Positions 12,265-51,392 of a stretch of DNA of 64,000 bases are shown here, one piece after another. Source of the DNA: Lepidodermella squamata (Eukaryota > Animalia > Gastrotricha); the NCBI GenBank assembly GCA_047495785.1, contig JBLDXI010000042.1, positions 1,302,001 through 1,366,000 on the forward strand, given 5' to 3'. The position numbers and the translations under genes are program-made. Below the pieces are notes generated by a model that was not told the DNA's origin, made no database searches, and saw only the letters and a list, made by a program, of their open reading frames with translations. Every line of letters begins with the position of its first letter. Positions within the stretch are counted from its first letter, which is position 1.

Positions 12265-12679
12265 TACAATAAATCAACAATGCTAGCTGGCGACCAAAGA
12301 GCAAACGACGAAAAGGCAATATACGTAAAAGTCAAGGTCAATTGAACAATTCTGCGGCGAATAAATTGTGCATTTTCCATATACAACAATAGGTTTACAT
12401 GTAATCGACAACGGAGAATCCGAATATGACGTTCATTTTGTTATGAAGCAATTATAACCCAATGATAGCCCCTCCAACTAATTTTTCTGTTCACTGCTAT
12501 GGAGTTGGCATGGTTATATTTTTTATTAAATAACATAATGCAGTTCAAGTTTCAGGGCTCGAAGTTTTAAAGCACATTTTTAAGTGAGCGGTTCAATAAC
12601 GCACTGTCTTATTTCCATATTCATATGCATGCGCAGAAACAAAAAAAAATAATAATAACAATAAAAAATTAAAAGAAAA

Positions 12680-12756
12680 TGTGTCGCGGCCGGGACTCGA
12701 ACCCTCCATTAACTGCATTTCACAACGTTACACTGAAACCACTCGGCCACAACACA
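12680..12756 (-). ncRNA. tRNA-derived (Pol III A/B-box) sequence inside element A
   Basis: Minus strand: TGTGTTG-TGGCCGAGTGG (A box)...GGTTCGAGTCCC (B box)...CGACACA, then TTTTCTTTT. T- and anticodon stems are imperfect. Confidence 0.55.
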
Positions 12757-13488
12757 TCTGACATATCCATCGCAAATTAAATTTCAATTAAATATTCAAC
12801 GAAATTATCAAAACAGTTTCCAGCGCCTTCCGGGAATCGGACGCGTCTCTATATAATTTATTCACTATATAATTCGCTACGCAGTGGTTCGGAAGGCAGT
12901 GGTTCGATTGCTGCTCACATCACATTTTTCCTTCTCATTTTTTCTTCTTAAAATCAGATTTATTTCTGTTTAATTTTTTTGCAGAGTGAGCAATAAAAAA
13001 TAAACGTTTACCATTCACGTGAATCTTCATGAGTACAAAGTGCATGCCTGTCATATGGCCGACACGCGATTCAGCATCAGCTGTTTCACGGCGCAGCGGC
13101 GGCAACAGCAAGCAGACGGTTCGATCCGGTATTCAACCATCATTCACAACGATTTATTTCTCTTCAAAACAACCTCTATTTCCCTAATCATTAGAATTAC
13201 TTATGCTGCCAGCTCCTATCAATCTATCTTCCGCTCGAATCGATAACATTGTGACAATGTTGCTCTCTCAGGTTTGCTAGTATATTATTCCCAGTTCATA
13301 TCACCATTCCCACTATAATTACAGCTACTGGATGAAATGGCGATTTCAACACTGTTGTCCACTTTGGTTTTCCATGGTCACTACTCCCTACCAGAAAGCG
13401 GTGAGTACATTATTTTCCTCATTCATTTTTTTTACTATTGTAAAATTTATTGATTTTTTCATTCATTAACACGTTTTTTTTGCTCCCC

Positions 13489-15611
13489 AATATTTTCTTT
13501 CGTCGTTATGCTCCCGTATTCGACGTTTTCGCCATCAGCAACGTCGATTCCACTAATTCATGTCATTTAATTTTACCCTGATTTACTTTTTTCAAGAATT
13601 TTTTCAAACTTTGAAATTCCAAACCAAGGTCGTAGGTTGGTGCCCGACCTCTCATTTTTTCGCCCTCAAATATTTTCTTTCATCGATATGCTCCCGTTCT
13701 CGACGTTTTCGCCATCAGCAACGTCGATTCCACTAATTCATGTCAATTAATTTTACCCTGATTTACTTTTTTCAAGAATTTTTTCAAACTTTGAAATTCC
13801 AAACCAAGGTCGTAGGTTGGTGCCCGACCTCTCATTTTTTCGCCCTCAAATATTTTCTTTCATCGATATGCTCCCGTTCTCGACGTTTTCGCCATCAGCA
13901 ACGTCGATTCCACTAATTCATGTCAATTAATTTTACCCTGATTTACTTTTTTCAAGAATTTTTTCAAACTTTGAAATTCCAAACCAAGGTCGTAGGTTGG
14001 TGCCCGACCTCTCATTTTTTCGCCCTCAAATATTTTCTTTCATCGATATGCTCCCGTTCTCGACGTTTTCGCCATCAGCAACGTCGATTCCACTAATTCA
14101 TGTCAATTAATTTTACCCTGATTTACTTTTTTCAAGAATTTTTTCAAACTTTGAAATTCCAAACCAAGGTCGTAGGTTGGTGCCCGACCTCTCATTTTTT
14201 CGCCCTCAAATATTTTCTTTCATCGATATGCTCCCGTTCTCGACGTTTTCGCCATCAGCAACGTCGATTCCACTAATTCATGTCAATTAATTTTACCCTG
14301 ATTTACTTTTTTCAAGAATTTTTTCAAACTTTGAAATTCCAAACCAAGGTCGTAGGTTGGTGCCCGACCTCTCATTTTTTCGCCCTCAAATATTTTCTTT
14401 CATCGATATGCTCCCGTTCTCGACGTTTTCGCCATCAGCAACGTCGATTCCACTAATTCATGTCAATTAATTTTACCCTGATTTACTTTTTTCAAGAATT
14501 TTTTCTAACTTTGAAATTCCAAACCAAGGTCGTAGGTTGGTGCCCGACCTCTCATTTTTTCGCCCTCAAATATTTTCTTTCATCGATATGCTCCCGTTCT
14601 CGACGTTTTCGCCATCAGCAACGTCGATTCCACTAATTCATGTCAATTAATTTTACCCTGATTTACTTTTTTCAAGAATTTTTTCAAACTTTGAAATTCC
14701 AAACCAAGGTCGTAGGTTGGTGCCCGACCTCTCATTTTTTCGCCCTCAAATATTTTCTTTCATCGATATGCTCCCGTTCTCGACGTTTTCGCCATCAGCA
14801 ACGTCGATTCCACTAATTCATGTCAATTAATTTTACCCTGATTAACTTTTTTCAAGAATTTTTTCAAACTTTGAAATCCCAAACCAAGGTCGTAGGTTGG
14901 TGCCCGACCTCTCATTTTTTCGCCCTCAAATATTTTCTTTCATCGATATGCTCCCGTTCTCGACGTTTTCGCCATCAGCAACGTCGATTCCACTAATTCA
15001 TGTCAATTAATTTTACCCTGATTTACTTTTTTCAAGAATTTTTTCAAACTTTGAAATTCCAAACCAAGGTCGTAGGTTGGTGCCCGACCTCTCATTTTTT
15101 CGCCCTCAAATATTTTCTTTCATCGATATGCTCCCGTTCTCGACGTTTTCGCCATCAGCAACGTCGATTCCACTAATTCATGTAAATTAATTCTACCCTG
15201 ATTTACTTTTTTCAAGAATTTTTTCAAACTTTGAAATCCCAAACCAAGGTCGTAGGTTGGTGCCCGACCTCTCATTTTTTCGCCCTCAAATATTTTCTTT
15301 CATCGATATGCTCCCGTTCTCGACGTTTTCGCCATCAGCAACGTCGATTCCACTAATTCATGTCAATTAATTTTACCCTGATTTACTTTTTTCAAGAATT
15401 TTTTCAAACTTTGAAATCCCAAACCAAGGTCGTAGGTTGGTGCCCGACCTCTCATTTTTTCGCCCTCAAATATTTTCTTTCATCGATATGCTCCCGTTCT
15501 CGAAGTTTTCGCCATCAGCAACGTCGATTCCACTAATTCATGTCAATTAATTTTACCCTGATTTACTTTTTTCAAGAATTTTTTCAAACTTTGAAATTCC
15601 AAACGAAGGTC
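13489..15611 (+). repeat. 180-bp satellite array, ~12 near-identical units
   Basis: Sequence recurs exactly every three 60-nt lines with only scattered substitutions; no spacers. Confidence 0.98.
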
Positions 15612-16311: not shown

Positions 16312-19300
16312 ATGGTGAAACCGCCTAATTGGAAGCCAAAATCGAAGGGATCGCGTAAGTGTTCCTTTTGCAAACGGAAAGGTGTTCGAATCTCAACCCA
16401 CTGCGGACTACTCAATTGCTCTAAAGCTAAAGGGCAACACCATCCCAAGCCGTGCATTAAGGTTCAACCTCCACAGTCCGCTTCTCAGTCCAATTGTATG
16501 TTTTCCTAATCAATCAGTTATATATGTTTCATCTGTTTTTACACAGCCACGTCGTGTTCGCATGTTGGCGAATCTTTATCGGTAGCTCCATCCTCACTCA
16601 CTGTTCAGAATACGTCTCAGCAGTCGTTGATATCTCAAGGCTTGTTCTTGTTATTCATCCTCAAATTGTATAAATTTGCGATAAAATTTCCCCATAGGTA
16701 GCGGCGCTGTTCTGACTGCTTCGGAGCAATTGTTGGATTCTCAAGGTCAGTAATTTTTATTTCTCAACTATAACTTGACATGTGGCTGTGCCGTTCCAGC
16801 TGTTCCGGCTACCCGGGAAGATCCGCTGCCACCTCCGGGTTAGTTGTTAGATTGAGATTTATTTCATGTCTTGAGCGAATACCACTAAGCTCTTTTAAGA
16901 ATTATAAGAATTGAAGAGGTGTTAACATATGATTGTTATGTCATTTAGTCTTGTCAAATAATATTTTCAGGCGCTTCTTTGAACGAACGGCAGGAATCTA
17001 GCGCGCCTGCAACACGTCAGCCAGTAACTCAGCCATCTTGTCCAGTATGCGGCGCAAAAGGCAGGAAGTATCTGACCCACTGCGACAATGAGGAATGCCG
17101 GATTAGTGGCCGCGGGCATCACGCTAATCCCTGTTTCCAGTTGGAACGACCCGGGCTACAGGCCGGTGTAAATCTTGAGCAGCAACGTAAGTATTATCCA
17201 CCGGGTAACAACCTTTCATAAATAATGATTCATTTAGCTGTGGCGTCCTCTGGAGCTGTTGCTGCTACGTCACAACGGTCGCTGCCATCTATAGGTTAGT
17301 TATTTAATCAAGAATTGTGCTGCCTGGTGTTAACTAAAACTGCTGTTTGTTGCAGCTAGTGGTGGTTCTTCTAATGCACCTATTCTATGTGACAACTGCA
17401 GAAGACGATCGGTGCCCTTTTTCGACATCGACATTGCTGTCGTGGAAGAGCCGGTATCTGGACGCAGCTATGGTGCTCTAGGACTAAGGAAAGTCTATGA
17501 AAACTGCTCGTTATGCCGTTGTTGCCGTCACTATTTGCGCAACGGCGATGCTCGTTTTCCCGCCGGATGGCCAGCCCTTGTTTATAGCCTTTTCTTCAAA
17601 GCAGCGAATAGGCACCTAGCAGAGGCCCTCTCTAACTACATATCGCCGCTCATGAAAATGATGTGGAGCGAGGTCGACGGCTCAAATGTTATGCGGGACT
17701 CGCAGCCGTGTTTCGTTGACAAGACACGTGATCTGGCTGATTTCATGGCCAATATCTACAAAGACGCAGGTATTCTATCAACCTACTAAATGAGTATACG
17801 AATGCAGTTTTTTTTTTAATTGCAGGAGGATTCAGTTACGCGCTAAACATGTACCCAGTGCCCGACGTGATATGTCCGCAAGGTTGCCTCGCTTTCATGG
17901 AGAAGTGCCAGCTAATCCCGTACCATCATTTGATCCAACATGTCACTGGCAGCAATTTCTTCGATTCCGACTTGCGCTGGTTCGAGTCAAGGAGACCCGA
18001 CTGGCCGTGCAACCCAGTGCCTTTCCTCGCTTGGGATTTCGCTGCTGCAATGGTCATGGACGAGACAAAGGGCCTATGCATCCTTGCCTGCATTGACCAC
18101 AGCAAGCCGGACCTGTTTTCCATGTACCTGCATCTCCCTGCGAATCCCGAGTTCGACCGGTTCCACGATCCGCAGCAGACCGAAATCTATGCACCCGTGC
18201 ACGTGCAGCCCAATTTCGTCAGAGGCGGGCGAGTCGGTCAGTCGAACGCATCAGTGCCAGTGACAAAAACTCTGGGTGATCAATTAGGTGTCGGCAGCTT
18301 TACATTGCGTGGTGCTCACTCGGCAAATCGCAAGGCTTTGAGCATGTACGCCAGCGCCTTTAAGCCACACCTTTTGGCCTTGCGATATCGTCCTGAGATT
18401 CGCAACACCGCGATCAGCAGATTTGGCGAGGAACACGTGGCTCACGTTCTTGCTGATTTTGATCAGCATTGCCCAACTGCTGTCGTGAGAAACCATGTCA
18501 AGGGTGGCACTTTCATCGAGCTAGCTGACTGTTACTTCACCTGGGCTATTCGCCGCAAAATCGCGACAGGTCAGTACATTTCATTCTTAATCTACTACTA
18601 TAGATTAGACTCAACAGAATTAGCACTGCATTAATTTTGCTGATAGTGATAGCCTTGTAATCGGGCCCTGCACTGAATTTTAGATGCGTTTTGTCCAATA
18701 TAAAATTCTCCAATATAAATGGTCAAAGAACGGATGTAGCAACTGTAGTAGAGTATCGCGCGGGATAACCACTGCAAATTATTATGTAGTGTACTTCGGG
18801 AGGATAAGATTAGGCCGATCGAACTGCTCCAAATTCTCGATATAATAAACAAATATAGAGATACTAAGATTCAAGCGCATTAACAATTCATCATCGATTC
18901 CTACGAATTGTCTCATTTCGTCCTTCTTTATTTTAGGAAGTGATTCGTCGAAAAAAGGGAAAACACCTTCAGAAGCCGTGATCTTCAATCCGGTTCACCC
19001 GAACGATGATCATGGCTTAATCCCCTGGGCGTTCAAGTCGGGTCAAGGCGACAACCCTAGTCAGCTCCTGACACTGGTTGCCAACGTCGTTTCGTTGTGC
19101 CGCCCTGTGTACCGTGCGGCGTTGAGTCATCTAGTGCTTGGCAGTCCCGATTTAACACGCGTCGACATCGGTGACTTGCTCAGTCATACTGTTTCGCTGC
19201 CGCGCCCGAAAACCCCTCGTACTCTGAATTTGTCGCATCTGGCAAGGGACTTCTGGTCACTGACAGAACCCGAAAGTGATAGCGGATCTGACGATGACGA

Positions 19301-22300
19301 AGAATCCCCCGATGTCGTTACGCGGGCATTAACTTTGATTGGGAGAGTTACTGCGCCGATTAATGATGTCGAGTTGTCGTTTGCTGGATCTCATCTTTTA
19401 GCGATAAGAAAGGGGCAAACCATGGACGGCGAAAGAAGGAGTCTCCGAAGTCATGGTGAGTGTTTTATTCATATTTTGGCAATTATTGCTGCATTATTAG
19501 ACGTTGTGGTGATACATATCATGATCTTGGGTCCTGAATTTCAAAATTTACTGGTTTTAATCAAAAATTGAAACAACAAAAAATTGAGGGCTCCCATTCA
19601 AGTTATAATGACGTAAATCTTGAAATATTGAGTAATTTTCAAATCGTTTGATTCATACCTAGATAACCCTTGTTTATTTCGTGTTGACAGTGGGTAGGGT
19701 GCTGGTCATCCACGGAGGTCAATCTCAGCTGCTGACCGAATACCAGACTTCGCATGAGCTGCTGATGTGCCGACCCGAAGGTGCCTTGCCGATCAATTGG
19801 CCCGCATTGCCCTTGTCGCTGAAAGCTGGTCATCACCTGCTACTTGCCCGCGTCAAGTTTGGCTCGAAATCCTACATCGTTTTTCGATGGTCGCCTAGCT
19901 TCAGTGGCTGGTGGACAGTAGAGCCTAGCGGGCGAGTGGTTCGTGGTGTCAGTGATCAGCACATGCGCTCTGACGTCCAATTTGCGATTTACGCTCTGCC
20001 TGGCAACCAGACGTTCTGCAATCAAGCCGTCCGTCAATCGCTCGGTGGTCAAAGCAAGGCTGCCTGCGAAATGCATTTCGACTCTGTCGAGTTCAACTTC
20101 ACTCTTATGAAAGTGCCGGTGAAACATAAGGTGAAGTGTTGCATGCGATCACCGGGAAGAGCCAATCAATGCGGCAAACCTGCTCAGTTGCGCTGTCCTG
20201 CGGGCTTGCAGAATGGCAGCTTGTCGTGCAGTGTCGGCATCTGCACGCGGTGCTTCAAGAAGCTTCCAGCGGACGGTATCACCAAGCTCTCAGCGCCTGA
20301 CTTTCTGCCTGATGTGCCTGAAGATGCTGAATTGCAACTGTCAGCTAGCAGGGCATCGAACTTGGAAGCTCAAGCCGACGAGGTTCCGCCGCAGCCTGAG
20401 CAGCTTCATTTGGCTACTGATATTCAATTTCCTCGAGGCGATGCTGAGCCGCTGTATGATCCGACCAAGGGTATTCTCGCCAAGTATCTCTGGCAGCACT
20501 TGGGAATTCTGCAGCGAACCAGGCTCGCTTTCGATTCTGCCCAGAAGTCTTTTCTACTGCAGCAGATGGTTGCCTTCGGAGATGCCCCTGCTACTTCCAT
20601 CTTGTACCCGGAGGGTGCTCTGTTTCCGTCACTTTTCTATTGCCAACGTGATGGCAGTGTTGTTGGTGCTTTGCCTCACCATCACTACTCGTCCTACAAC
20701 TCCGACTATACAGGTGGAATCGGCTCCCTGTCTGATCATGTCAAAGTCAGGTTGCGCAACTTCTTCTTGGCAACAAGCTGGTCGTTTGCGTCAATCTACT
20801 TCTCCTTTGACATGAAGCTATCGGCGCAGCTGAACAAAAACAGCACTGCAATCTTCATGAAGCGTGGGACAGAAGGCCTGGCAGGTAAAGGCGCTGTTGG
20901 CTGGTCTCCTCCTGGCACGGCTCTCGAATACGAGGAGTTCGACAAGGAGTCGAGGCTGAAAGAGCTTGGCGCCCTAATCAAGCATGAAGAATGGAAGTGG
21001 TTCGGGACAATTACTTGTAATGATACAGGTTAGCACAAGTTTTGGTATTCAATCTCACTCAATTGTAGACTGAATAATTTCTCCAAGAATTGTTTGAAAT
21101 TTGAAATTTTACCACCTCGACCTACACAATGCATTATTTTTCAATTCCAGGCACACCTGGTGTATGTGAAATCGTCAAAGCCCTTATGATAAACGCTCAA
21201 AGGCACCATGGTCCACGCCCTGTTCTGTCGAAGGCCGACTATCAGCGAACTTTTCGTCAGCGTCTGCTCCTTGTTTCAAGGCTTGACGAGACCGAGTACA
21301 AGCGGCTGTACTACGCCCATTTCATCCTCATCAGCATGGCTTGGCAACGAGTGCAGGAGCATCTGATCGAGTTCCTGAAGCGCACGAATGTTGTTGGCAC
21401 TGTCACCACTATTTTCGTCAGGAACGAATTTCAGAGCGAATCACTCGTTGGCAACAAAAGTCATCTGCATATGGGCATTTCAGTACGCGAAAGCCGGGCA
21501 GAACTGCTGGAGAAAGTTTGCTGTGATCCTCGTGAATTCTTCTCGGAGCGGTACGGCACGTCATTCGACGAGCTTCAGCGCTTGAGGTTGGTCGAGAGCC
21601 GAGATCACTTCGAGCTGCTCAAGGAGGTCCATTACCCCTTCCAACGTCACGAATGCGAGAAAGCGTTTTGGAAATGTCAAGTTCCACGCGGCGAAGGAGG
21701 GGAAATGGTTTGCCGAGTTCGCCAGCACGGCGTCTCCAGCAGCGGCTATTTCGAAGAATTCCGCAACGTGTACTCCGAGGATACCCTGAAAGAGCTGCAA
21801 TCCCTAGACCTCGCCAGAGAAGTGCCCAATCCCACTGGCGACTTTGACTGGGAATTTCTGGCTGATCAGCTCAAGTCGGGCGTGTACCACTACGCGATCA
21901 AGCATCTCGAGAAGGGCGTGAAGTTCATTCCGCAAATCCCGATCATCGCGGCAATGATGGGCGGCTCCACGAACTTTCAGATATGCGATTCTCATTTCAG
22001 CGTATCTTACCTGACGAGCTACGTTGCCAGCTCCGACGCTCGCCCTGAAGCTTACGCTGCAACGACAGATGTTCCGGGCCAAGTCGTTGCTTTGTTCCCT
22101 GCTGGTTTTGAGCGAGGTCAAAAGCTTGCTAGTGTTCGGTGAGTAATATCTTTGCACTTCAATTGACTTGAAAAACTTTGATGTTTTTAGGAAAGTGATG
22201 GAAGCGAAGCTGAAGCATTTCCGTCGAGAAAGCATGCAGAGCTTTATCTTCATCGCCTTGACAGAAGTTGCTTGGTTCGCGTTGGGGTTTCCCTACACCA

Positions 22301-25300: not shown

Positions 25301-26313
25301 TCACGTTCCGCGTTTTACGAACAACTTCCGGGTTAGTCCACTTACTTATTTGGCTCTTTGTATAGTCAACTCACTAATTGCGTATGTCCCATTATATATC
25401 GAGTCTTGACAGTTCATATTTCTATAACCATTTTATTATATTTCAAAATAGAATAAGTCGAACGTTTTCAAGAAAATTTTTCTTATAGATCATTCACGAT
25501 CGAGCAGCTTGGCGATGCTCAAACTTCCATCCCATTGTAAGTATGGCATTGTTCATCTGCTTTATATACTATTCAAAACTTCTTCATAGCCCTGCAACCG
25601 TTGACCAGGCAAGCTCCTCCGATGCGCCTGTTGTCCCACGGTTAGTATAACCTATCAATTCCATTTCATTGCTTCAAATTCTGCTCAATTTATCAGAGTG
25701 CCGACATTGTTGGACTTCTACCGCGTCGTCGGTCCTGATTTGTCGGAACGCGAGCCCAATGGCGTCGTTTATCAATTGGTGGAGGTGGCTCAGCCGTGGG
25801 CCAGCTACTTTGGCGAAACCGAGCAAGCGCCTCTACAGCGACTTTATGACCACAATCACAGTAAATACAAGAGAGACTAAAAAAATCGAACTGCTAACAT
25901 TTGATTTCAGATGCAGGGGCCGCGATGACTCGCGGCAAGCAATGGCATTTGTACGCCGTCGCTCGTGGCTTGCCTGATGACGAAACCAGGTTGAACCTGG
26001 AGAAAAGGTGCCAGGACCTAATTACAGCGCAACCTGAGCTTTTGCCGTGGCAAGTTAGGACCAAGTTTGAGTCCTACGTGGACGACATCAACGCTCGCCT
26101 GCATGGGTCCACTGCTGTAATTCGTTACGGCGAGTTGGACGAGGCTAAGGTTCACCGCCTGCGTACGATCTCCTTGTGAGTCAGCTGATGGATGTCATTC
26201 TTTTTACTCAATCCTTTCACTTTTCAGCACGTCGACAATTAGAGTAGCACCGGCGCCACCGTCAGCGCAAGAAGAAGCAGGTGAACTAATCGACCAAGAT
26301 CCGCCCCCAAAGC
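16312..26313 (+). CDS. Multi-exon RepHel transposase A: Cys/His fingers + HUH/Y2 Rep + Pif1-like helicase + GIY-YIG nuclease (3' end apparently truncated relative to B)
   Basis: Rep motif 1 WFGTITCND (split by intron 21029-21150), motif 2 RNEFQSESLVGNKSHLH, motif 3 YLTSYVAS, ALTEVAWFALGFP. Helicase GPPGAGKT, IIEEIGLV, GDFAQL, QFPLRHYIASTIHRIMGST, QLAVILSR. Intron positions match copy B. Whether the 5' finger exons splice into the same mRNA is inferred. Confidence 0.85.
25697..26175 (+). CDS. SLX1/UPF0213-like GIY-YIG endonuclease domain of element A (two exons)
   Basis: GVVYQL...SYFGET...LQRLYDHN|DAGAAMTRGKQW-L-A---GL...LE: Tyr, Tyr, Arg, His and Glu at GIY-YIG catalytic positions. Confidence 0.75.
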
Positions 26314-27972: not shown

Positions 27973-28053
27973 TGTGTCGCGACCGGGACTCGAACCCTCC
28001 ATTAACTTTACATTTCACGATGTTACGCCGAAACCACTCGGCCACACAACACA
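27973..28053 (-). ncRNA. tRNA-derived (Pol III A/B-box) sequence inside element B
   Basis: Homologue of 12680-12756 with TGGCCGAGTGG and GGTTCGAGTCCC retained. Confidence 0.5.
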
Positions 28054-29610: not shown

Positions 29611-29798
29611 TCGGACCCAAGCTCTCGTTTCTTGAGTCTCTGTCATTGAATGTTCCCTGTCAATACCAGACGAATGAGTTTAAAAAAATTGAAATATAAC
29701 TTCCCGTTATAGACCCTAATTTCCGCCGACCTTAATGTACCTCTAATATATTGCTTTATTTTATTATCCTAGTTTTTTTATGATAATTTTTCTCTCGT

Positions 29799-32700: not shown

Positions 32701-35700
32701 TCATTATCTGTAGCAGCACTTCGTCTAGAAGGTTTTCAGTGGCGCTCGGTTGTTAGACTGCCTATGATTTCATAAGGCCGATCGAACTGCTTCAAATTCT
32801 TAATATAGGAAACAAATCTTGAGATACAAGCTATGATAGCAATTCATAATTCATTATCCATTTTTTCCAATTGTCTTGCTTACGTGTTTCTTAATTTTAG
32901 GCACGAATACGTCGAAAACAGTGAAAGCCCCTTCGGAAAAGCTGATCTTCAATCCTGTCCACCCGAATGATGATTATGGCTTAATCCCTTGGGCGTTCAA
33001 GTCGAGTCGAGGTGATAACTTCAGTCAGCTCCTTACGCTTGTCGCCCACGTGGTGTCGTTGTGCAGGCCTGTGTACCGTGCTTCGTTGTCCCACCTGGTG
33101 CTTGGCAGTCCTGATTTAGCACGCGTCGACATCGGTGACTTGCTCAGTCATACAGTTTCGCTGCCGCGCCCGAAAACTCCTCGTACCCTGAATCTGTTGC
33201 ACCTGGCAAGAGATTTTTGGAAACTGACCAACCCTGAGTCGGATGGTGACGGATCTGATGATGATGAGGAATCCCCCGATGTCGTTATCCGGGCATTAAC
33301 CTTGATTGCAAGAATTACTGCGCCGATCAATGATGTCGAGTTGTCGTTTGGTGGATCTGTCCTTTTGGCGATAAGGAAGGGTGAAATTGTTGACGGCGAC
33401 GGAAGAAGTCTTCGAAGTCATGGTGAGTCATTCACTTTTGTTTTGGTGAAATTGAGGACTAATTTTGAATGACGTAAATAATCATAAATTTAGTAATTTT
33501 CACATCGCCTGAATCATATCTTTATAAGAGTTTATTTTGTGTTAACAGTGGGCAGGGTGCTCGTCATCCACGACGGTCAATCTCAGCTATTGACCGAATT
33601 CCAGTCTTCGCGTGAGCTGCTGCTGTGCCGCCCGGAAGGTGCCTTGCCGATCAAATGGCCTGCATTGCCTTTGTCGTTGAAAGCTGGCCATCACCTTCTA
33701 TTTGCCAGCGTCAAGTTTGGCTCTAAATTGTACATCGTTTTTCGATGGTCACCGAGCTTCAGTGGCTGGTGGACAGTAGAGCCTAGCGGGCGAGTGATTC
33801 GTGGTGTCAGCGATCAACTCATGCGCTCTGACGTCGAATTTGCGATTTACGCTCTGCCTGGCAACCAGACCTTCTGCAATCAGGCCGTGCGTCAATCGCT
33901 GGGTGGCCAGAGCAAGGCGGCATGCGAAATGCACTACGACTCCATCGAGTTCAACTTCACCCTGATGAAAGTGCCTGCCAAGCATAAGGTGAAGTGTTGC
34001 TTGCGATTGCCGGGAAGAGCTAATCAATGCGGCAAACCTGCTCAGTTGCGTTGTCCTGCTGGCTTGCAGAATGGCAGCATGTCGTGCAGTGTCGGCATCT
34101 GCCCGCGGTGCTTCAAAAAGCTTTCAGCGAACAGCATCACCAAGCTCTCAGCACCCGACTTTTTGCCTGATGTGCCTGAAGATGCTGAATTGCAACTGTC
34201 AGCTAGCAGGGTATCGAACTTGGAAGCTGAAGCCGATGAGGTCTTGCCCCAGCCCGAGCACGTTGATTTGGCTGCTGACATTCAGTTTCCTCGAGCTGAT
34301 GTTGAGCCGCTCTATGATCCCACCAAGGGAATTCTCGCCAAGTACCTCTGGCAGCACTTGGGAATTCTGCAGCGAACTAGGCTGGCTTTCGACTCTGCCC
34401 AAAAGTCGTTTCTACTGCAGCAGATGGTTGCTTTCGGTGATGCGCCGGCGACATCGATTTTGTTCCCAGAAGGTGCCTTGTTCCCGTCGCTTTTCTATTA
34501 CCAACGAGATGGAAGTGTTGTTGGGGCTTTGCCTTACCACCACTACTCGTCGAACGCATCAGGCTATTTTGGTGGAATCGGCTCGCTATCTGACCATGTT
34601 AAAGTGAGACTCCGCAACTTCTTCTTGGCAACAAGCTGGTCTTTTGCGTCGCTCTACTTCTCTTTTGACATGAAACTATCGGCGCAGCTGAACAGCAACA
34701 GCACGGCAATTTTCATGAAGCGTGGAACAGAAGGCCTGGCTGGTAAGGGCGCGGTTGGCTGGTCTCCTCCTGGCACTGCTTTGGAATACGAGGAGTTCGA
34801 CAAGGAGTCGAGGCTAAAGGAACTTGGCGCCCTAATCAAGCATGAAGAATGGAAGTGGTTCGGGACAATCACGTGCAATGATACAGGTTTGGAGATTTTA
34901 GCAAATAAGTAGCATCTTCCATACTTCAATTAAGTAGCAATTATGAAGTAAGCAATTTTTAAACCAAACTTTTTCGTCATCAGCACCATCGATTCAACTT
35001 ATCCCTGTCATTAAATTGTACGCTGATCAAATTTTTACAGGAAATTTTTCAAAATTTGAAATTCCAAAACAAGGTCGTAGGTTGGAGCCTGACATCTCGT
35101 TTTTTTGCTCTAAATTAATTTTCCCTTATCCCTGTGCTCTCGTCCTCGGCGTTTTCGTCATCAGGACCATCGATTCAACTTATCCCTGTCATTAAATTGT
35201 ACGCTGATCAAAGTTTTTGGAGAAATTTTTCAAAATTTGAAATTCCAAAACAAGGTTGTAGGTTGGAGCCTGACATCTCGTTTTTTTGCTCTGAATTAAT
35301 TTTCCCTTATCCCTGTGCTCTCGTCCTCGGCGTTTTCGTCATCAGGACCATCGATTCAACTTATCCCTGTCATTAAATTGTACGCTGATCAAAGTTTTTG
35401 GAGAAATTTTTCAAAATTTGAAATTCCAAAACAAGGTTGTAGGTTGGAGCCTGACATCTCGTTTTTTTGCTCTGAATTAATTTTCCCTTATCCCTGTGCT
35501 CTCGTCCTCGGCGTTTTCGTCATCAGGACCATCGATTCAACTTATCCCTGTCATTAAATTGTACGCTGATCAAATTTTTACAGGAAATTTTTCAAAATTT
35601 GAAATTCCAAAACAAGGTCGTGGGTTGGAGCCTGACATCTCGTTTTTTTGCTCTGAATTAATTTTCCCTTATCCCTGTGCTCTCGTCCTCGGCGTTTTCG

Positions 35701-38700
35701 TCATCAGGACCATCGATTCAACTTATCCCTGTCATTAAATTGTACGCTGATCAAAGTTTTTGGAGAAATTTTTCAAAATTTGAAATTCGTAAACAAGGTT
35801 GTAGGTTGGAGCCTGACATCTCGGTTTTTGCTCTAAATTAATTTTCCCTTATCCCTGTGCTCTCGTCCTCGGCGTTTTCGTCATCAGGACCATCGATTCA
35901 ACTTATCCCTGTCATTAAATTGTACGCTGATCAAAGTTTTTGGAGAAATTTTTCAAAATTTGAAATTCCAAAACAAGGTTGTAGGTTGGAGCCTGACATC
36001 TCGTTTTTTTGCTCTGAATTAATTTTCCCTTATCCCTGTGCTCTCGTCCTCGGCGTTTTCGTCATCAGGACCATCGATTCAACTTATCCCTGTCATTAAA
36101 TTGTACGCTGATCAAAGTTTTTGGAGAAATTTTTCAAAATTTGAAATTCCAAAACAAGGTTGTAGGTTGGAGCCTGACATCTCGTTTTTTTGCTCTGAAT
36201 TAATTTTCCCTTATCCCTGTGCTCTCGTCCTCGGCGTTTTCGTCATCAGGACCATCGATTCAACTTATCCCTGTCATTAAATTGTACGCTGATCAAAGTT
36301 TTTGGAGAAATTTTTCAAAATTTGAAATTCCAAAACAAGGTTGTAGGTTGGAGCCTGACATCTCGTTTTTTTGCTCTGAATTAATTTTCCCTTATCCCTG
36401 TGCTCTCGTCCTCGGCGTTTTCGTCATCAGGACCATCGATTCAACTTATCCCTGTCATTAAATTGTACGCTGATCAAATTTTTACAGGAAATTTTTCAAA
36501 ATTTGAAATTCAAAAACAAGGTCGTAGGTTGGAGCCTGACATCTCGTTTTTTTGCTCTGAATTAATTTTCCCTTATCCCTGTGCTCTCGTCCTCGGCGTT
36601 TTCGTCATCAGGACCATCGATTCAACTTATCCCTGTCATTAAATTGTACGCTGATCAAAGTTTTTGGAGAAATTTTTCAAAATTTGAAATTCCAAAACAA
36701 GGTTGTAGGTTGGAGCCTGACATCTCGTTTTTTTGCTCTGAATTAATTTTCCCTTATCCCTGTGCTCTCGTCCTCGGCGTTTTCGTCATCAGGACCATCG
36801 ATTCAACTTATCCCTGTCATTAAATTGTACGCTGATCAAAGTTTTTGGAGAAATTTTTCAAAATTTGAAATTCCAAAACAAGGTTGTAGGTTGGAGCCTG
36901 ACATCTCGTTTTTTTGCTCTGAATTAATTTTCCCTTATCCCTGTGCTCTCGTCCTCGGCGTTTTCGTCATCAGGACCATCGATTCAACTTATCCCTGTCA
37001 TTAAATTGTACGCTGATCAAATTTTTACAGGAAATTTTTCAAAATTTGAAATTCCAAAACAAGGTCGTAGGTTGGAGCCTGACATCTCGTTTTTTTGCTC
37101 TAAATTAATTTCCCTTATCCCTGTGCTCTTGTTCTCGTCGGACCCAAGCTCTCGTCTCTTGAGTCTCTAAATTTGTCTTTGATTCTCATGCTCAACACAT
37201 AATGCAAAATTCGTATTTCCAGGCACACCTGGTGTATGTGAAATCGTGAAGGCCCTAATGATAAACGCTCAAAGGCACCATGGTCCACGCCCTGTTCTGT
37301 CGAAGGCCGACTATCAGCGAACTTTTCGTCAGCGTCTGCTACTTGTTTCAAGGCTTGACGAGACCGAGTACAAGCGGCTGTACTACGCCCATTTTATCCT
37401 TATCAGCATGGCTTGGCAACGAGTGCAGGAGCATCTGATCGAGTTCCTGAAGCGCACGAATGTAGTTGGCACGGTCACCACTATTTTCGTCAGGAACGAA
37501 TTTCAAAGCGAATCACTCGTTGGCAACAAAAGTCATCTGCATATGGGCATTTCAGTACGCGAAAGCCGGGCAGAACTGCTGGAGAAGGTTTGCTGTGATC
37601 CTCGTGAATTCTTCTCGGAGCGGTACGGCACGTCATTCGACGAGCTTCAGCGCTTGAGGTTGGTCGAAAGCCGAGATCACTTCGAGCTGCTCAAGGAGGT
37701 CCATTACCCCTTCCAACGTCACGAATGCGAGAAAGCGTTTTGGAAATGTCAAGTTCCACGCGGCGAAGGTGGGGAAATGGTTTGCCGAGTTCGCCAGCAC
37801 GGTGTCTCCAGCAGCAACTATTTGGAAGAATTCCGCAACCTGTACTCCGAGGATACCCTGAAAGAGCTGCAATCCCTAGACCTCGCCAGAGAAGTGCCCA
37901 ATCCCACTGGCGACTTTGACTGGGAATTTCTGGCTGATCAGCTCAAGTCCGGCGTGTACCACTACGCGATTAAGCATCTCGAGAAGGGCGTGAAGTTCAT
38001 TCCCCAAATCCCGATCATCGCGGCAATGATGGGCGGCTCCACGAACTTTCAGATTTGCGATTCTCATTTCAGCGTATCTTACCTGACGAGCTACGTTGCC
38101 AGCTCCGACGCTCGTCCAGAAGCTTACGCTGCAACGACAGATGTTCCGGGCCAGGTCGTTGCTTTGTTCCCTGCTGGTTTTGAGCGAGGTCAAAAGCTTG
38201 CTAGTGTTCGGTGAGTGATATCTTTGCAGAGTTTATTGACTTTTTGAAAAACATGGACATTTTCAGGAAAGTGATGGAAGCGAAGCTGAAGCACTTCCGT
38301 CGTGAAAGCATGCAGAGCTTTATCTTCATCGCCTTGACAGAAGTTGCATGGTTCGCGTTGGGGTTTCCCTACACCATCACAAACGTCGGTTTCGTGCACA
38401 TCAACACGCACCCACCAGCTTCGCGGCTGATGTTGTGGCGACCGAAAGAAGCAGTGAAAAAGCGACTACCGGGTATGCTCTTGAGAATAGTTATTTTGAA
38501 TATTTTCAAATAATATTCGATAAACAGGTACAGATGTCGTTGCTGTCGACCCAAACTACAACCGTCGGGGCCTGCCTGAGTGGCGCTTGTTCACGGAAGC
38601 GTGCATTCGCCTGATCATGAAAATGAGTGGCACGAATCTGCACGCTGGCCCTGTGGAGAAATTCGAGATTCGACCTCCCGAGGCTCGTGTCTTTGCGTCA

Positions 38701-41700
38701 CCTGCTATCTATCACGCGGTGTTCATCATCGACCGAAAAAACCGACGGCCATACAACCCGATGGTCGACCCTTACATCCGTTTTTTCGACGGCTTCAAGC
38801 GGGAGGTCCGAATCAACGATTGTAGTTTGCAAATAGCGCTCGATTATCTGGCTCAGCAGGACCAGGCAAGTCCAGCCGTGCAAGCTCTTACGGAGATCTT
38901 TGAATACTTGGCCGAAGGCGATCCTATCTACGTCGCTCGGTAAGAGTTTAGTGAAAATTCATCTTAAATGTGTTAACATTTTATGTTTCACTAGGTATCT
39001 GCACGTCACCAATAAGGCGGCGATAATTCCAGTCCTATCCACCGTTTCTCCGCTCAACCGCTTCAACTTTTTGTATCACGTCGTGATGACGTTTGGTCGA
39101 ATCGAAGAGGAAGCTACGACCTTTCAGGCTGGTCACCTTCGCGCGGCATTTGTTCGATCGGGCCTCATTCGGGTCAATCCAGAAGGCGAGCCGACCCATC
39201 TTCGTGAAGACGTGAATGCGCTGAAGCGACGAGTTATTCTCGAGATCTTCGCATTCCTGCCAGTTGGTGTGAAGAGATTCGATTTCTACGTCAAAACCCT
39301 GAAATCCATGTTCGAGGAGTTTTTCTTTGGCGATGGAAACACTGACAATCTCTGTCCAACGACTGACTGGGATGCGATCGAACGAGAAGTTGACGAAGAC
39401 ATTGCTCGCACGGAAGCAGAAATGAGGCGATCTGTTCTAGAGGTCACGCATTCGCAACTGCACGACAAGCTGCAACTACCACCTTTGTCTGCTTTCGATA
39501 AGGCTACGCCACAAGAACAGTTGGAATGGGTCCCTAGTCTGCAGCGGCAACGAGGTCAGTCTGATCAGTCATTCCAGGAGCAGCAGGCGGCCTTGGCGTT
39601 CGGAATGAAGACGATCCATCGCTTCCAAAGCAGAGCTAGCTACAAGCATCTCGCACTTGTTGGTCCTCCGGGGGCTGGGAAGACAACGCTGGCGCAGACA
39701 CTTGCTTTGTATGCGATGGCTAAAGGGCTCAGAGTGATGATAACTGCACTGACTTCTGAGCGGGCGCGTGTTCTCGGTGGTCGCCACATCCATTTGCTTT
39801 TCCCGATTCCTGTCAAGGAGAAGCCGTATAGGGAAGTGATGGCGTATGCGGATAATTGCCTCAAAAACCTTTGCTTCAAAACCACACCTTCGGTTATGCT
39901 ATATCGCGTGGATGTATTCATTGTCGAGGAGATTGGCCTTGTGAATGCCGAAACTCTGGATATTTTGGACACTGTCATGAGGAGTCTTACAGGTAAGAAA
40001 ACTAGTATTCAATTATTGTTCACATTTATGGTTTGTATCAGGAGTCGATGCGAAAATGGGTGGCAAATTGGTCATTGCTACAGGCGACTTTGCACAGCTG
40101 GAGACCATTAATGGTGAGAGTTGATTTATCACAATTTTTAGTTCTATGTTTGTTTCTTTATGTTTCAATTTAGGTCGATCATTTTGGGAATCAACGCAGC
40201 TGTACCTCAGCTACGACGTCGCGTTGTTCAAACATTTCGTTCGGGCCGCGACCGACCCGTTGCTTCAGCGAGTGTTGTTAACATTGCGGCAAGCCATTCT
40301 GGATGAGAGCGACCGTGACTTCGTCCTCAAAGCTGTGAATGGCACTTGCATCTTCTACGATTCATGGGACGCTGTTCCCTTTCAAGTTCAGCGAATCGTC
40401 CCAACAAGAGACGCTGAGCAAGAGGTTTGTTAGATATGTCAATGTTGAAGGTCACGCATGCCTTGTTACCAAACAGGTCATTCGGAAGTTCCTGCAAGAC
40501 GCCAGTCTAAGTGGCAAGACTTTGAAAACAGCATTGTGCATCGACGAAGTGAGCACGCGTGGTGCCTGGGAACCTCTCCACCGTCCTGAATGGAAAAAAG
40601 CTATCAACAAACAATCGCTCAAGCCTGAGAGCCTAACCCTGTTTGTTGGTGCCGTGGTTGCTATGACCTACAACCACGTAGCGTCGAACCCGCAACACTC
40701 ATTCTCTCAAGGACAGCTGGCTCTGGTCACGCAGCTGCCGGAAGACATGGATGCACCGGATGCCAAAATTGCTGTCCGGCTAGTGCCTCCAGGGGTGCGT
40801 GATATTGCACCAGATGAAGCTTGGCCTGTGATAAATGTGGGCCGCCATCGGGACGATAATATTGTTGTAGGCGACAACAAAACGCACCTGCGTCGTGTTC
40901 AGTTTCCGCTGCGGCATTACATTGCCTCGACTATTCATCGTGAGTGCTAACCTTGTTATTTCTATTTAAGTAGATGAAGACCTTACTTTTTTCAGGAATC
41001 ATGGGTTCCACCTGCGAGAACGGTGTTGCAGCCAAAATTGCCTCCAACGAGAAGGTAAGTATTGATAATAATAACTGTGGATATTGAATGTTCAATGTAC
41101 TGTAATGAAGGGCTACGTGCTATGGGAACGAGCGCAGCTTGCTGTGATTCTCTCACGGTGCCGTTCACTTGACCGTGTCTCATTTGTTGGCGAACGCGCA
41201 GACATCACTCTGGCCATCGAAAGACTGTTGATGGCAGTTGATGAGCCATACGAGGCTATTGTCGCATCGCTGCAAACGCTGGACGTGCTGTCTAATTCAA
41301 TAGTCGCCAGTAACTGGTCAGCCGGCCGACAGCAGCAGGTCAGCGTCCCCGACGAACTGCCTGACATCACGTTCCGCGTTTTACGAACAACTTCCGGGTT
41401 AGTCCACTTGTTTCGTGTTATTTATAGTCAAATAGATAATTGCGTATGTCCCATTATATCGAGCCTTGGCAGTTCCTATTTCTATAACCATATAATAAGT
41501 CGAATGTTTTCAAGAAACATTTTTCTCTTAGATCATTCACGATCGAGCAGATTGGTGATGGTCAACCTTGTATGCCATTGTAAGTTTGGCATTGTTCATC
41601 TGCTTTTTATACTATTCTTACTTTCTTCATAGGCCTTCAGCCGCTGAGCAGGCAAGCTCTTCCGATGTGCCTCGGTTAGTAAAACCTATCCATTCCGTTT

Positions 41701-43402
41701 CATTGCTTAAATTTCTTCTAAATTTAACAGAGTGCCGCCATTGTTAGACTTTTACCGCGTGGTCGGTCCTGATTTGTCGGAACGCGAGCCTAATGGCTTC
41801 GTCTACCAATTGGTGGAGGTGGCTCAGCCATGGGCCAGCTACTGCGGCGAAACTACGCATGCGCCTCTAAAGCGACTTTACGAGCACAATCACAGTAAAT
41901 ACAAGAGAGACTAAAATGAATCAAACTACTGAAATTTCATTTCAGATGCAGGGGCCGCGATGACTCGCGGCAAGCAATGGTACTTGTACACCGTCGCTCG
42001 TGGTTTGCCTGATGACGACACCAGGTTGCGCCTGGAGAAAAGGTGTCAGGACCTTATCACAGCGCAACCTCAGCTGTTGCCATGGCAAGTCAGAGCTAAA
42101 TTCGAATGTTACGTCGACGAAATAAATGCTCGGCTTCAATTGTGCGGCGATCCGATAGCGGTGATCCGATACGGTCAGTTGGATGAGGCGAAAGTTCGCC
42201 GCCTGCAATTCATCTCCTTGTGAGTCACCTGATGGATTTAATTCTTTTTAGTTAATACGTTCACTTTTTCAGCACATCGGAAATTCGGACAGCGCCGGCG
42301 CCACCGCCAGCGCAAGAAGAAGCAAGTGAACTCATCGACCAAGACCTCCCCTCAACTCCTAACCCTCAGCCTGTCACTCTTCCTGGGACATCAAACCCAT
42401 CTGCCAGCCGACGACCATTGAATCCTGGTGCGATTTTACCAGCAGCGCCTCGTGTGGTTACAGGTCTATTTGAATCAATCGGCCCTACCCATTTTGAGGA
42501 TGAACCATTTGGATTTGTGTACCATATCGTTTCGCTCAGCCGACCTTGGCACAGCTATTACGGAGAAACCACGTATTCCCCGATCAAACGCTTGTCTGAA
42601 CACAATAACAGTATGATGTTAATGTAAGTTATATCTCTCTTCATTATCCGTCTTTTAATTAGATGCGGGGGCTGTCATGACTCGTGGCGACCAGTGGCTG
42701 CTCTACGCAGTCGTCTCCCAGCTGTCAAGTCGGCGAGAGCGGATGTATCTCGAGGCAGAAATGCATCGAATACTTCGCCGGTATCCCCGAATTTTGCCAT
42801 GGCAATTGCGAGCGCGACTATTCAACGTCGTGGCCAACTGGCAAATGTACAACCGGAGTGCCGCAGTTGTCATCCACATGAGTGACCTCAATGAAGGCGA
42901 AGTTCGGCGACGCCTTACAGCTCGAGCAGCGTTAAGGAATGGTGATCTGCCAGGTTTGTGCCGAAAGCTATTTATATTTTTTATCACTGAACTTACTGTT
43001 TACGTTTGTTAACCCAAATGAAGAGAGCGATTTCCTTGATGGCATTAATCGCCCGGTTGGTTGCGTTACAACCGGGGATCCAAACGCGCCAGGTGAATTT
43101 ATTAACTGTCAAATTATTTACTTATTTTTTATTTGTAAACAGCTGATTGTCCGCCAGAACTTTTCCAAATGCCACTTACCCTCGCGGATGTCTTGTCGCT
43201 GCAACCGGCGCCCATTCCGCGGCAACGCCAACCTCAGCCGCTAATTCTACCAGTGCAGGAAGACAGGTGCCACTGTGGCGAGGAGATTTTCGGAGCGTGC
43301 TGCTGCGCTTACCATCAGGCGCACTTTCCGCAGCTGCTATGCCACGACCACTTCATGGCCAGCCAGTGCAGCGCTCCGCAGGAGGAAAACACGCAAGCAT
43401 AA
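29799..43402 (+). CDS. Multi-exon RepHel transposase B: Cys/His fingers + HUH/Y2 Rep + Pif1-like helicase + two GIY-YIG domains + C-terminal Cys/His finger
   Basis: Same Rep and helicase motifs as A; about 25 introns by manual splicing; ends RCHCGEEIFGACCCAYHQAHFPQLLCHDHFMASQC...stop at 43402. Confidence 0.85.
34971..37140 (+). repeat. 181-bp satellite array, ~12 units, inside intron 34887-37222 of the Rep domain
   Basis: Identical ORF fragments recur every 181 bp; the equivalent intron in A is only 122 bp. Confidence 0.98.
41731..42217 (+). CDS. GIY-YIG domain 1 of element B
   Basis: GFVYQL...SYCGET...LKRLYEHN|DAGAAMTRGKQW...LE. Confidence 0.75.
42460..42953 (+). CDS. GIY-YIG domain 2 of element B
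   Basis: GFVYHI...SYYGET...IKRLSEHN|DAGAVMTRGDQW...LE, with the intron at the same position as in domain 1. Confidence 0.75.
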
Positions 43403-43422
43403 ATCTTCCAAACAAGTCGCTA

Positions 43423-43506
43423 CTAATGGTGTCATCATTAGGGCTAATGGTGTCATCATTAGGGCTAATGGTGTCATCATTAGGGCTAATGGTGTCATCA
43501 TTAGGG
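43423..43506 (+). repeat. 21-bp minisatellite x4 (CTAATGGTGTCATCATTAGGG)
   Basis: Four exact units just after the stop codon of gene B. Confidence 0.95.
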
Positions 43507-43845
43507 CCCGGTATCGCCCCTATCCGGGGTCACAACTACCTCGCGTATTTGTTGACCACCACCGAGTAGACACACCCCGGTGCATGTCTATGAAGGGAGG
43601 GGCCCTTTCTTAAAAAAAATTAACTTCCCTTATTAACAGTATTCATTCATTCATTTAATTCTACTTACAAATTTATATCTATGTGCATCCTCTTTTCCTT
43701 TTTTAATCTGTTATCACATGTCATCGATTAGATTATTTTTTGCTTTGTTCCCTGCCTTATTTTAATGCTGTCAACAACTCTCGTGAAGAGTAAGCCCTAT
43801 GGTTCTTGCATTCCCTTGCATTCTCTTCCATTCTCTTATTTTCAG

Positions 43846-44567
43846 AGAAGCGAAACAAAGGGACATTCGTATTGTCCCCAGAAGAACTTCCGGGACTTCT
43901 GGGCGAATTAATTAATGGTTATACTATATTGCTGCCTATTATTTCTGTCTTTAATCATTATTGTATTTCTTTCTTTCTGTCTTCAACAACAGCTTGCTGC
44001 AGAAGAAGCGCGCTAAGCCGCCTGAGCCCGCCTATTTTCGAACGTGAAGAACGCATTAGCGTATGGAATAGGTTAGGGCCTTACAGCGGCTTTCCAACTT
44101 CGCTTGGCGTTGAAACCGGTTTGAAATAATTGTCTTAATAATGAGGAGTGGTTCGCATGATAATTTTTTCACAGATACAAGAGGAGCCGCTGATGCAACA
44201 CATGGTTACACTTCCTTTTTTTCAAATATTAGTTTCACTATTTCATGCCATTCAGTGAGTTCAGAAAGTGCAGCTAATCAAGAAGGTTGTTAGTTCTATG
44301 TTCATTTTCCAATTTCCAATAATCATTTGTGAACAAAATTTAGAATCGAGCGCTCCGAAATATCGACGCCGAAGAAGAAGAAGAACGTCGAAGAAGATCA
44401 AGCAGCAGCCGACGCAGGAGCAGCAACAGCAACTGATGCCCAAGCATAAGCAACTGCAGCAAAGGCAACTGATGCCCAAGCAGAAGCAACTGCAGCAAAT
44501 GCAACTGATACAGAAGCAGAAGCAGCGGAAGCACCAACGCCATTACCAACAGCAGCGGCCGAATGAT
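43846..44567 (+). pseudogene. Possible small spliced accessory gene or remnant inside element B (Ala/Thr/Glu-rich 3' exon)
   Basis: Short exon-like blocks flanked by AG/GT; last block reads EDQAAADAGAATATDAQA*ATAAKATDAQAEATAA, where TAA replaces the GAA of the neighbouring repeat. Confidence 0.3.
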
Positions 44568-45527
44568 TGGCAACAAACGATTAACATACAGAAATGTGTT
44601 ATCGTCGTGAGGAAATAACATGTTCTCGTAACTGTTCTCTTAACTGCCGTTGAAGAAGAAGAGAGGTCCGAATCAACGATAAATAAATGTCATCTTATTG
44701 TTACCCTGATTGTTTTTTGCAAGAAATTCTTCAACCTTCGGAACTAAACATGGTCGCAGTTTCGAACCCGATCTCTCGTCTTTTTGCCAATTTTATTCCC
44801 CAACCTTCATTTTTCCGTTCTTTGCTACTCAATTGTTACCCGATTGTGCAATTTCAAATGTCATCAACATTGGGGTGAGGGGGAAACATCATCCCCTCCA
44901 ATGACGTGGAGGGGATCTCGCAGGGGTGGTTACACATCTTACGCCGTGCGCAGCACCCAGGAGAGTAGAGAGAAAGAAAGAAAAAGGCTAGCGCAGCGTC
45001 AGCCTTGTGGAACTCTCCTGGATGAGAGGCGCGACCGTAGGTTTTCCCGAGACGATAGTCTCAAATGTCAAATTTATATACGCCATTCATTGTGGGAATC
45101 CACCATAGGGTATTTCACGCGTCGAAAGCTACTCAAATGTTAAGCCAAGTATGTCGCACAACCTTGAGCTTGGTGTCATTCGATAGCCCTTGCTCTAGAA
45201 CCTCCCAGAATAATTAGTTGATTAGATCGGATGATTTTTCGAATTATGGCAAATTTTAAACTGATTTCCGATAAATCGATCGATTAAAAAAACTGCATAA
45301 AAAATGGTCCATTCAACAGGAGGATCATGGTGATATCATAAAAAATGCTACGAAAAGGAAAAAATGAAGTCACCCTCGGCCTCTCCCCAAGGCTTGGGGG
45401 AGGCCATAGTCGCTTATCAAATTAATTTTCATTTTTCATTTAACACTTGAAAGTGCGCTGGTGGAAACACTCTGAAACACTCTCTGATGACGATTTTCGG
45501 AAAAGAGCACATTTTTTAAACGGAATG

Positions 45528-51384: not shown

Positions 51385-51392
51385 TATAAAAG
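51385..51392 (+). promoter_or_regulatory. Probable TATA box of Cys-rich paralog 2
   Basis: TATAAAAG ~150 bp upstream of the ATG, conserved on the minus strand at ~48023-48030 for paralog 1 and again at ~53821. Confidence 0.55.

Follow-up and report, generated by a model that had tools for sequence, protein, structure and literature searches.

The question raised by this locus is what kind of genetic element carries two long, neighbouring genes in which a HUH-type Rep domain, a Pif1-like helicase and a GIY-YIG nuclease appear to be joined. The genes lie in a 64,000-nt stretch of DNA of the gastrotrich Lepidodermella squamata (assembly GCA_047495785.1, contig JBLDXI010000042.1, positions 1,302,001 to 1,366,000 of the forward strand), referred to below as the window, and all coordinates are counted from its first letter. 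Probably, the window holds two autonomous elements from one family of giant Helitron-like rolling-circle transposons, arranged head to tail amid their own non-autonomous, satellite-bearing derivatives and encoding one spliced transposase each. This reading is based on the observed gene structure and domain content, on the joining of the domains both in RNA and in frame, on purifying selection, and on the occurrence across a wide clade of the same architecture, which lacks the apurinic/apyrimidinic (AP) endonuclease of Helentrons.

Comparison of the window with itself revealed copy A (17027–26307) and copy B (30520–42351), both on the + strand and with a nucleotide identity of 82–88%; their proteins are 89% identical over 2522 aligned codons, and both frames are open. 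Each protein exceeds 2500 aa and has the same order of parts, namely, a clade-specific N-terminal region of about 1075 aa that is probably of Zn type, a HUH Rep domain with two tyrosines, a Pif1-like helicase and, at the C-terminus, a GIY-YIG domain, of which B has two. The Rep domain of A (20731–22138, interrupted by intron 21029–21150) contains the motifs FGTITCND (21001–21024), GNKSHLHMG, which includes HUH (21450–21476), and SYLTSYVA with its two tyrosines (22005–22028). In an alignment of the window Rep with 14 relatives, the TCND, GNKxHxH and YLxxY (YLxKY) blocks were conserved, as was an H/C cluster between the blocks. The Rep profile of the clade had a single match in PDB, the Helraiser transposase 7lcc (E = 0.012, via motifs I and III), and the Rep open reading frame (ORF) of the window alone matched no solved structure. 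In the Atlas, the same ORF is placed beside Helitron_like_N clusters, and Pfam Helitron_like_N was found in the Rep regions of relatives, adjoining PIF1. The superfamily 1 (SF1) helicase of A (23500–25331) was recognized by Pfam in one of its exons as AAA_30 (E = 3 × 10−8) and PIF1 (E = 6 × 10−5) and carries Walker A (GPPGAGKT, 23588–23611) followed by Walker B, GDFAQL, TIHR..G and LSR; its Walker B reads EEIG, the same as in several relatives. A single open frame runs through both the Rep and the helicase domains. The combination of a HUH Rep, in which motif I, HxH and two tyrosines are present, with a Pif1-like helicase downstream is a Helitron-like arrangement. The first-pass annotation, made from the letters of the window, had described two tandem elements with HUH/Y2 Rep and Pif1 motifs and a C-terminal GIY-YIG domain, preceded by more than 1000 aa of unrecognized Cys-rich N-terminus. 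All of these motifs were located in open frames, and in A the N-terminus preceding Rep motif I is 1075 aa long, has 3.1% Cys and matched no Pfam family.

The structure of gene A (16312–26400, + strand; a tentative first exon followed by 20 exons) includes 19 introns downstream of position 16949. Contigs of RNA run X1 cover part of copy A, and ten of these introns, 49–57 nt long apart from one of 157 nt, are backed by GT..AG joints in this run (23919–23967, 24354–24409, 24873–24928, 24988–25044, 25332–25488, 25537–25589, 25641–25696, 25861–25910, 26176–26227 and 26315–26366). The nine introns further upstream were deduced from the reading frame, the splice consensus and homology, and they are independently supported because 18 of the 19 A introns, when projected by alignment onto B, give GT..AG at the homologous base. 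With all 19 introns removed, the frame of A is open for 2545 aa from 16949 to the stop codon at 26398–26400, and that of gene B (29799 to at least 43009, + strand) is open for 2626 aa from 30436. The candidate first exon, whose ATG lies at 16312 in A and at 29799 in B, codes for a basic stretch and, after it, a Cys/His motif; it is proposed from A/B conservation only and had no RNA support.

In RNA, the joints continue without a gap from the Walker B exon, whose last base is 23918, via both GIY-YIG exons to 26366, and the frame is open across all helicase-to-nuclease joints in both copies. Splicing with an RNA run had been proposed as a check at first pass, with separate transcription of the GIY-YIG exons as the outcome to be feared; the recovered GT..AG joints instead connect the exons of the helicase with those of the GIY-YIG domain. 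RNA depth in run X1 was 0–2 upstream of about 23650 and 5–24 downstream of it, the step lying within the Walker A exon. This step may be caused by 3' bias or by an internal transcription start giving a helicase–nuclease product.

The GIY-YIG domain of A is encoded by two exons within 25697–26175, with intron 25861–25910 between the halves, and contains VVYQL, YFGET, RLYDHN and the E residue. When the residues of the three window domains were aligned, namely, that of A and the first (41731–42219) and second (42451–43009) tandem domains of B, the tyrosines of GIY and YIG, Arg, His-Asn and Glu proved to be retained. The exon 25697–25860 alone scored E = 0.05 against Pfam GIY-YIG, which is poor because the intron splits the domain. 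A hidden Markov model built from the Pfam-verified domains of five relatives gave E = 1.9 × 10−9 for spliced A, E = 3.7 × 10−10 for B and 37.8 bits for the second domain of B, whose own 52-nt intron (42611–42662) occupies the same place as the intron of the first domain. When a nuclease profile made of 16 relatives and the window exon pieces was compared with PDB, SLX1 ranked first (4xlg, E = 9 × 10−15; 7cq2, E = 1.4 × 10−14; 6seh, E = 1.2 × 10−13), followed by the plant SLX1 homologue HIGLE (7wme, E = 1 × 10−9) and then by bacterial UPF0213. An AlphaFold model of the GIY-YIG domain of a relative (predicted local distance difference test, pLDDT, 86; predicted template modelling score, pTM, 0.78) was submitted to Foldseek, and the eleven best matches were SLX1 and HIGLE chains (probability 1.0, E of about 1 × 10−3, template modelling score up to 0.52), with I-TevI and UvrC far lower. 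According to the profile, and to the predicted fold of the relative, the domain is an SLX1-like GIY-YIG nuclease, as the first-pass annotation had supposed from the catalytic-type Y/Y/R/H/E residues; the structural match to GIY-YIG on which it had made its proposal depend was obtained with SLX1 and HIGLE at the top. No RING-type zinc finger was found after the GIY-YIG domain in copy A, which ends 75 aa past the domain, and most relatives end within 10–30 aa after it.

The search of the window Rep exon against 1.84 billion representative proteins returned 123 matches, the best with 34% identity; an exact look-up of the window Rep ORF in public assemblies gave no match. Pfam analysis of the long matches revealed Helitron_like_N, PIF1 and a C-terminal GIY-YIG domain, with an N-terminal OTU domain in some. 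GIY-YIG was present in 35 of the 36 relatives that have at least 100 aa after the helicase, and relatives in which it is missing are truncated predictions. That nearly all relatives have it in the same C-terminal position indicates a feature of the lineage rather than a one-off capture. An AP endonuclease (Exo_endo_phos) was detected by Pfam neither in the window exons nor in the 15 relatives scanned. Named carriers are the ostracod Cyprideis torosa, the amphipod Hyalella azteca and the tunicate Styela clava (at least five loci), and most other relatives are single ORFs of 2200–3000 aa on metagenome contigs, labelled by JGI as 'predicted GIY-YIG superfamily endonuclease'. In the intron-free relatives, Rep, helicase and GIY-YIG follow in the same order within one ORF. 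Since the RNA joints, the open frame in both copies and these intron-free relatives agree, the GIY-YIG fusion is real.

The clade also has in common an N-terminal block of about 400 aa (17356–18569 in A, two exons), which is found in nearly all relatives with E-values down to 1 × 10−55 and contains near-invariant Cys/His residues. Its predicted structure is confident over residues 10–230. No sequence match for it was detected in PDB, and Foldseek comparison with PDB and AlphaFold clusters gave E-values of 0.5 or worse, with VIA-align Z-scores of 4.2 or less. On the strength of this model, the domain is a candidate new fold. A terminase-type nuclease was considered as its identity following a weak hint from the Atlas, which was not borne out. 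It should be noted that upstream of this block, in the first two exons, the short motif C-x2-C-x9-H-C-x4-C-x7-H-H-x3-C occurs twice (16312–16480 and 17030–17130) and is kept in copy B; neither occurrence matched Pfam.

As regards the mechanism, analogy with the biochemistry of Helraiser suggests that the two tyrosines of Rep would nick single-stranded DNA at the element ends and that the helicase (5'–3') would peel off the transposing strand. The GIY-YIG domain would take the place held by the AP endonuclease in Helentrons and would nick duplex DNA at the target or donor, and this nick could provide both a 5' entry point for the helicase and an exposed single strand for Rep. The role of duplex nickase, proposed by analogy, is preferred because of the C-terminal position of the domain, because the Helentron AP endonuclease offers a parallel, and because single-stranded DNA is a requirement of HUH enzymes and SF1B helicases alike.

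The first-pass annotation had put forward another role for the nuclease of the same element, namely, structure-specific cleavage of rolling-circle intermediates, such as flaps and forks arising from the helicase or the junctions that link tandem copies. The nearest solved relatives of the domain are indeed SLX1 enzymes, whose substrates are flaps, forks and junctions; the domain stands directly behind a helicase that makes such structures; and the elements are arranged head to tail, as would be expected of read-through products. However, SLX1 enzymes usually depend on SLX4 and a RING domain, and the SLX4-binding RING is missing in copy A and in most relatives. The position of the domain is, moreover, that of the Helentron AP endonuclease, and the GIY-YIG nucleases of Penelope-like retroelements, which represent a different GIY-YIG subfamily in a different, reverse transcriptase-bearing class of elements, are nicking enzymes for integration. 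Kinship with SLX1 fits duplex nicking and the cutting of branched intermediates equally well, and overall we consider the branched-intermediate role unlikely, although it is the strongest of the alternatives to the reading given above.

Comparison of A and B over 2522 codons gave a nonsynonymous divergence (dN) of 0.062, a synonymous divergence (dS) of 0.44 and a dN/dS ratio of 0.14; both copies are under purifying selection. A separate observation is that dS between the copies (16949–26314 versus 30436–42413) varied tenfold, from 0.13 to 1.26, across blocks of 250 codons, as if parts of the genes had been exchanged among members of the family.

Mobility was most evident in a relative with four loci in one assembly (717–26503 of L002; the further loci are L001, L003 and L004), which share 25.8 kb at 99.4% identity and have common ends. 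This relative encodes a single RepHel-GIY-YIG ORF of 2455 aa and has a 363-bp × 3.2 array near its 5' end; its extra ORFs gave nothing in a Pfam scan. The motif at its 3' end (..GCTAGGTGGTC) recurs just outside the 5' end, in the 5' flank, as if the element had inserted alongside a copy of this end. For the window family, contigs of DNA run X2 were compared with the region 20755–22290. One contig with exactly the 13 differences of copy B over 20767–20918 had a word depth of 45, A-type contigs had word depths of 387–443, and a third variant with four private differences had a depth of 93, which would correspond to about ten nearly identical A-type copies in the genome.

The candidate ends of the window elements were considered from the boundaries of homology. 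Homology between the coding units starts at 12483 and 27772 with TCTGT(T/A)CAC after a T run (start of unit A, TCTGTTCAC..), the unit boundaries read ..ATTTT|TCTGT.. with T-runs, and the GC palindrome of the recurrent non-coding module X, described below, is located 55–220 nt from the candidate ends. Inverted repeats between the candidate 5' and 3' ends were limited to matches of 8–9 nt. The ends given at first pass, 12265 and 45406, lie just past the GC palindrome of module X and represent one possible reading of the element ends.

Several points weigh against the interpretation of the locus as a pair of autonomous transposons with an SLX1-like nuclease. No empty site was found for the window elements, and neither a clear subterminal inverted repeat nor a 3' stem-loop was found within the last 60 bp of the candidate ends. 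The copy-number estimate relies on assembler word depths and is rough. A full-length transcript is weakly supported and an internal start is possible, given the RNA depth of 0–2 upstream of about 23650. The nuclease structure was predicted for the domain of a relative and not for that of the window, and copy A is without a RING domain, although SLX1 enzymes normally need one together with SLX4. Finally, the copies are mutually old (dS of 0.44) yet intact and adjacent, and tandemly duplicated domesticated genes would be expected to look the same.

The last point leads to the possibility that A and B are host genes, duplicated in tandem, which derive from such a transposon by domestication, have lost mobility and are maintained by selection for a cellular function. 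Both copies have remained intact at this divergence with a low dN/dS ratio and 18 of 19 intron positions kept, they stand side by side in the same orientation, and copy A is transcribed and correctly spliced. Against domestication, the word depths suggest about ten near-identical A-type copies as well as a third variant type, and the genes are embedded among array-bearing, coding-free units that have module X in common. Relatives are likewise multi-copy (the four 25.8-kb copies and at least five loci in Styela clava), and the mosaic of dS values fits exchange among many copies. Domestication is considered improbable.

Among known systems, Helentrons are the most similar. They have Rep(Y2), Pif1 and an endonuclease in one protein (Poulter 2003; Thomas et al. 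2014, PMC4067079), an OTU protease domain near the N-terminus as in some relatives of the window elements, T-runs at unit boundaries, tandem repeats inside the element and non-autonomous derivatives that also bear repeats; the F/W-x-R that precedes Rep motif 2 in the window clade resembles the Helentron signature F/Y-x-R (PMC4067079). The differences concern the C-terminal nuclease, which is an SLX1-type GIY-YIG here and an AP endonuclease (Exo_endo_phos) in Helentrons; the conserved N-terminal domain of about 400 aa with an unmatched fold; and Rep motif 2, in which the histidines are preceded by G-N-K-x here, by G-S-P in Helentrons and by G-L-P in Helitrons, these being positions by which Thomas et al. 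separate the two groups (PMC4067079); the form of the window clade agrees with neither. Helentron ends are characterized by insertion in TT, T-runs, subterminal inverted repeats of 11–13 bp and a stem-loop within 60 bp of the 3' end, of which the inverted repeats and the stem-loop were not found in the window elements. Canonical Helitrons have 5'-TC...CTRR-3' ends and a 3' hairpin and insert between A and T; the candidate 5' ends here do start with TC, no CTRR was found at any candidate 3' end, and the flanks are T-runs. Helraiser (HLE1; PDB 7lcc) has the same succession of a HUH two-tyrosine Rep and a Pif1-like helicase; however, it has no accessory nuclease and is very distant, since it was matched at E = 0.012 by the profile and not by the single sequence. 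SLX1, HIGLE and UPF0213 (URI-type) resemble the window nuclease in profile (E = 9 × 10−15), in fold and in the positions of Y, Y, R, H/N and E, whereas here the domain is the C-terminal part of a transposase and, in copy A and most relatives, has neither a RING finger nor a sign of an SLX4 partner.

The first-pass annotation had cautioned that GIY-YIG-bearing variants might already be known and that a close match to a described family with this architecture would refute its proposal. The nearest prior art consists of one sentence in the HELIANO paper of 2024, which speaks of a GIY-YIG domain as 'captured' in the HLE2 family HelenSM92 of the moss Sphagnum magellanicum (PMC11417382). This was the sole relevant statement found in the literature on Helitron, Helentron or RepHel with GIY-YIG or SLX1, a search that did not cover Repbase. 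HelenSM92 is similar in being of HLE2 class and in having GIY-YIG besides RepHel, the comparison being by description only (PMC11417382). The clade-wide architecture has thus barely been described before. That the GIY-YIG exons of the window are a separate captured gene whose fusion is an appearance created by chance alignment of open frames, as the word 'captured' and the climb of RNA depth in the 3' half of the gene might suggest, is highly improbable, since GT..AG joints connect every helicase-to-nuclease exon with the frame open throughout, copy B keeps the same junction structure, and intron-free relatives hold all three domains in one ORF.

Outgroup searches of proteins with the Rep and helicase of a relative, with the helicase alone and with a helicase profile returned only members of the same clade. 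It is conceivable, though we advance it tentatively, that the clade constitutes a third widely spread, as yet undescribed branch beside HLE1 and HLE2, defined by RepHel with an SLX1-type GIY-YIG, a signature of its own in Rep motif 2 and a Zn domain of about 400 aa at the N-terminus, whose fold would have neither a solved nor a predicted counterpart, and comprising giant (15–26 kb), satellite-seeding elements of crustaceans, tunicates and many uncultured eukaryotes. We know of no established reason for the presence of an endonuclease in Helentrons besides the HUH nuclease and the helicase. An unrelated nuclease family in the same position across a large clade argues that a job is needed rather than a particular enzyme, and the function in question would be to cut duplex or branched DNA in a way beyond the ability of the HUH enzyme. 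The clade also provides a second system for testing the need for an endonuclease. The domain architecture is not one that annotation tools for Helitron-like elements look for, and it gives a named origin to animal and metagenome proteins labelled 'uncharacterized' or 'predicted GIY-YIG endonuclease'.

Tandem Repeats Finder identified two large arrays in the window, one upstream of gene A (13475–15611, 180 bp × 11.9, 98% matches) and one in gene B (34971–37137, 181 bp × 12, 97%), which are 78% alike. The array of A is located 700 bp upstream of the ATG and downstream of segment Y, the 5' non-coding region that unit A (12486–13289) shares with unit B (segment Y', 27772–28543) at 72.5% identity. 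The array of B lies wholly within intron 34887–37222, between Rep motif I and the remaining Rep, and the frame is otherwise intact; the homologous intron of A measures 122 nt. This is a clean case of a satellite array hosted by an intron of a transposase gene that is transcribed. Two fragments of the 181-bp family are also present upstream of gene B (28609–28953 and 29244–29610, within 28609–29610). Between them, at 28955–29245, there is a copy of a 291-bp stretch of gene B (30813–31103, from the last part of intron 2 into exon 3) with 99.66% identity, and this near-identity points to a very recent transfer from gene B into the satellite array. The internal 180-bp arrays would be passive cargo that multiplies or is lost together with the element, as in derivatives of Helentrons, in which satellite-like arrays are well documented (PMC7492417, PMC4067079). 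The earlier statement that the elements carry their own satellite arrays therefore stands as to the arrays themselves, one of them inside an intron of B, while as a novelty of this lineage it does not (PMC7492417, PMC4067079). No Rfam family and no tRNA were found in the window, and the satellites are accordingly without a known ribozyme.

The first 12.5 kb of the window (1–12485, + strand) consist of a head-to-tail run of coding-free units, each with a GC-rich start, tandem repeats of 127–170 bp that are about 65% similar to the 180-bp array, and module X. This module of about 1 kb contains a 28-nt GC palindrome and ends in ..CCAAnnnATTTT, its 3' ends being located at 4142, 4242, 4726, 6603 and 12485. 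It recurs downstream of gene A as module X' (26864–27491, palindrome at 27409–27436), which is followed by 1.3 satellite-like monomers (27520–27770), and downstream of gene B as module X'' (44849–45051, diverged beyond), with a satellite-like piece (44687–44787) before it and a GC palindrome shortly before 45406, the whole region spanning 44687–45406. The coding-free units are likely to be non-autonomous partners of the coding elements. Within them, the sequence 1–541 is identical to 4776–5316, and the last 80–118 nt of module X occur three times in 4060–4726, each with an ATTTT end.

Downstream of the second nuclease domain of B, a Cys/His-rich frame (43139–43399), which had no Pfam match, is a candidate part of the C-terminus of B. 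The same region contains a perfect 21-bp × 4 repeat and a 36-bp × 2.9 repeat (43423–43507 and 44420–44524, respectively). A Pfam scan of the flanking ORFs at 46–61 kb gave nothing, and the ORFs inside an inverted duplication located there likewise had no Pfam match. The arms of this duplication (46724–48542 and 50863–52589) are about 1.8 kb long, have 84–87% identity and surround a 2.3-kb spacer.

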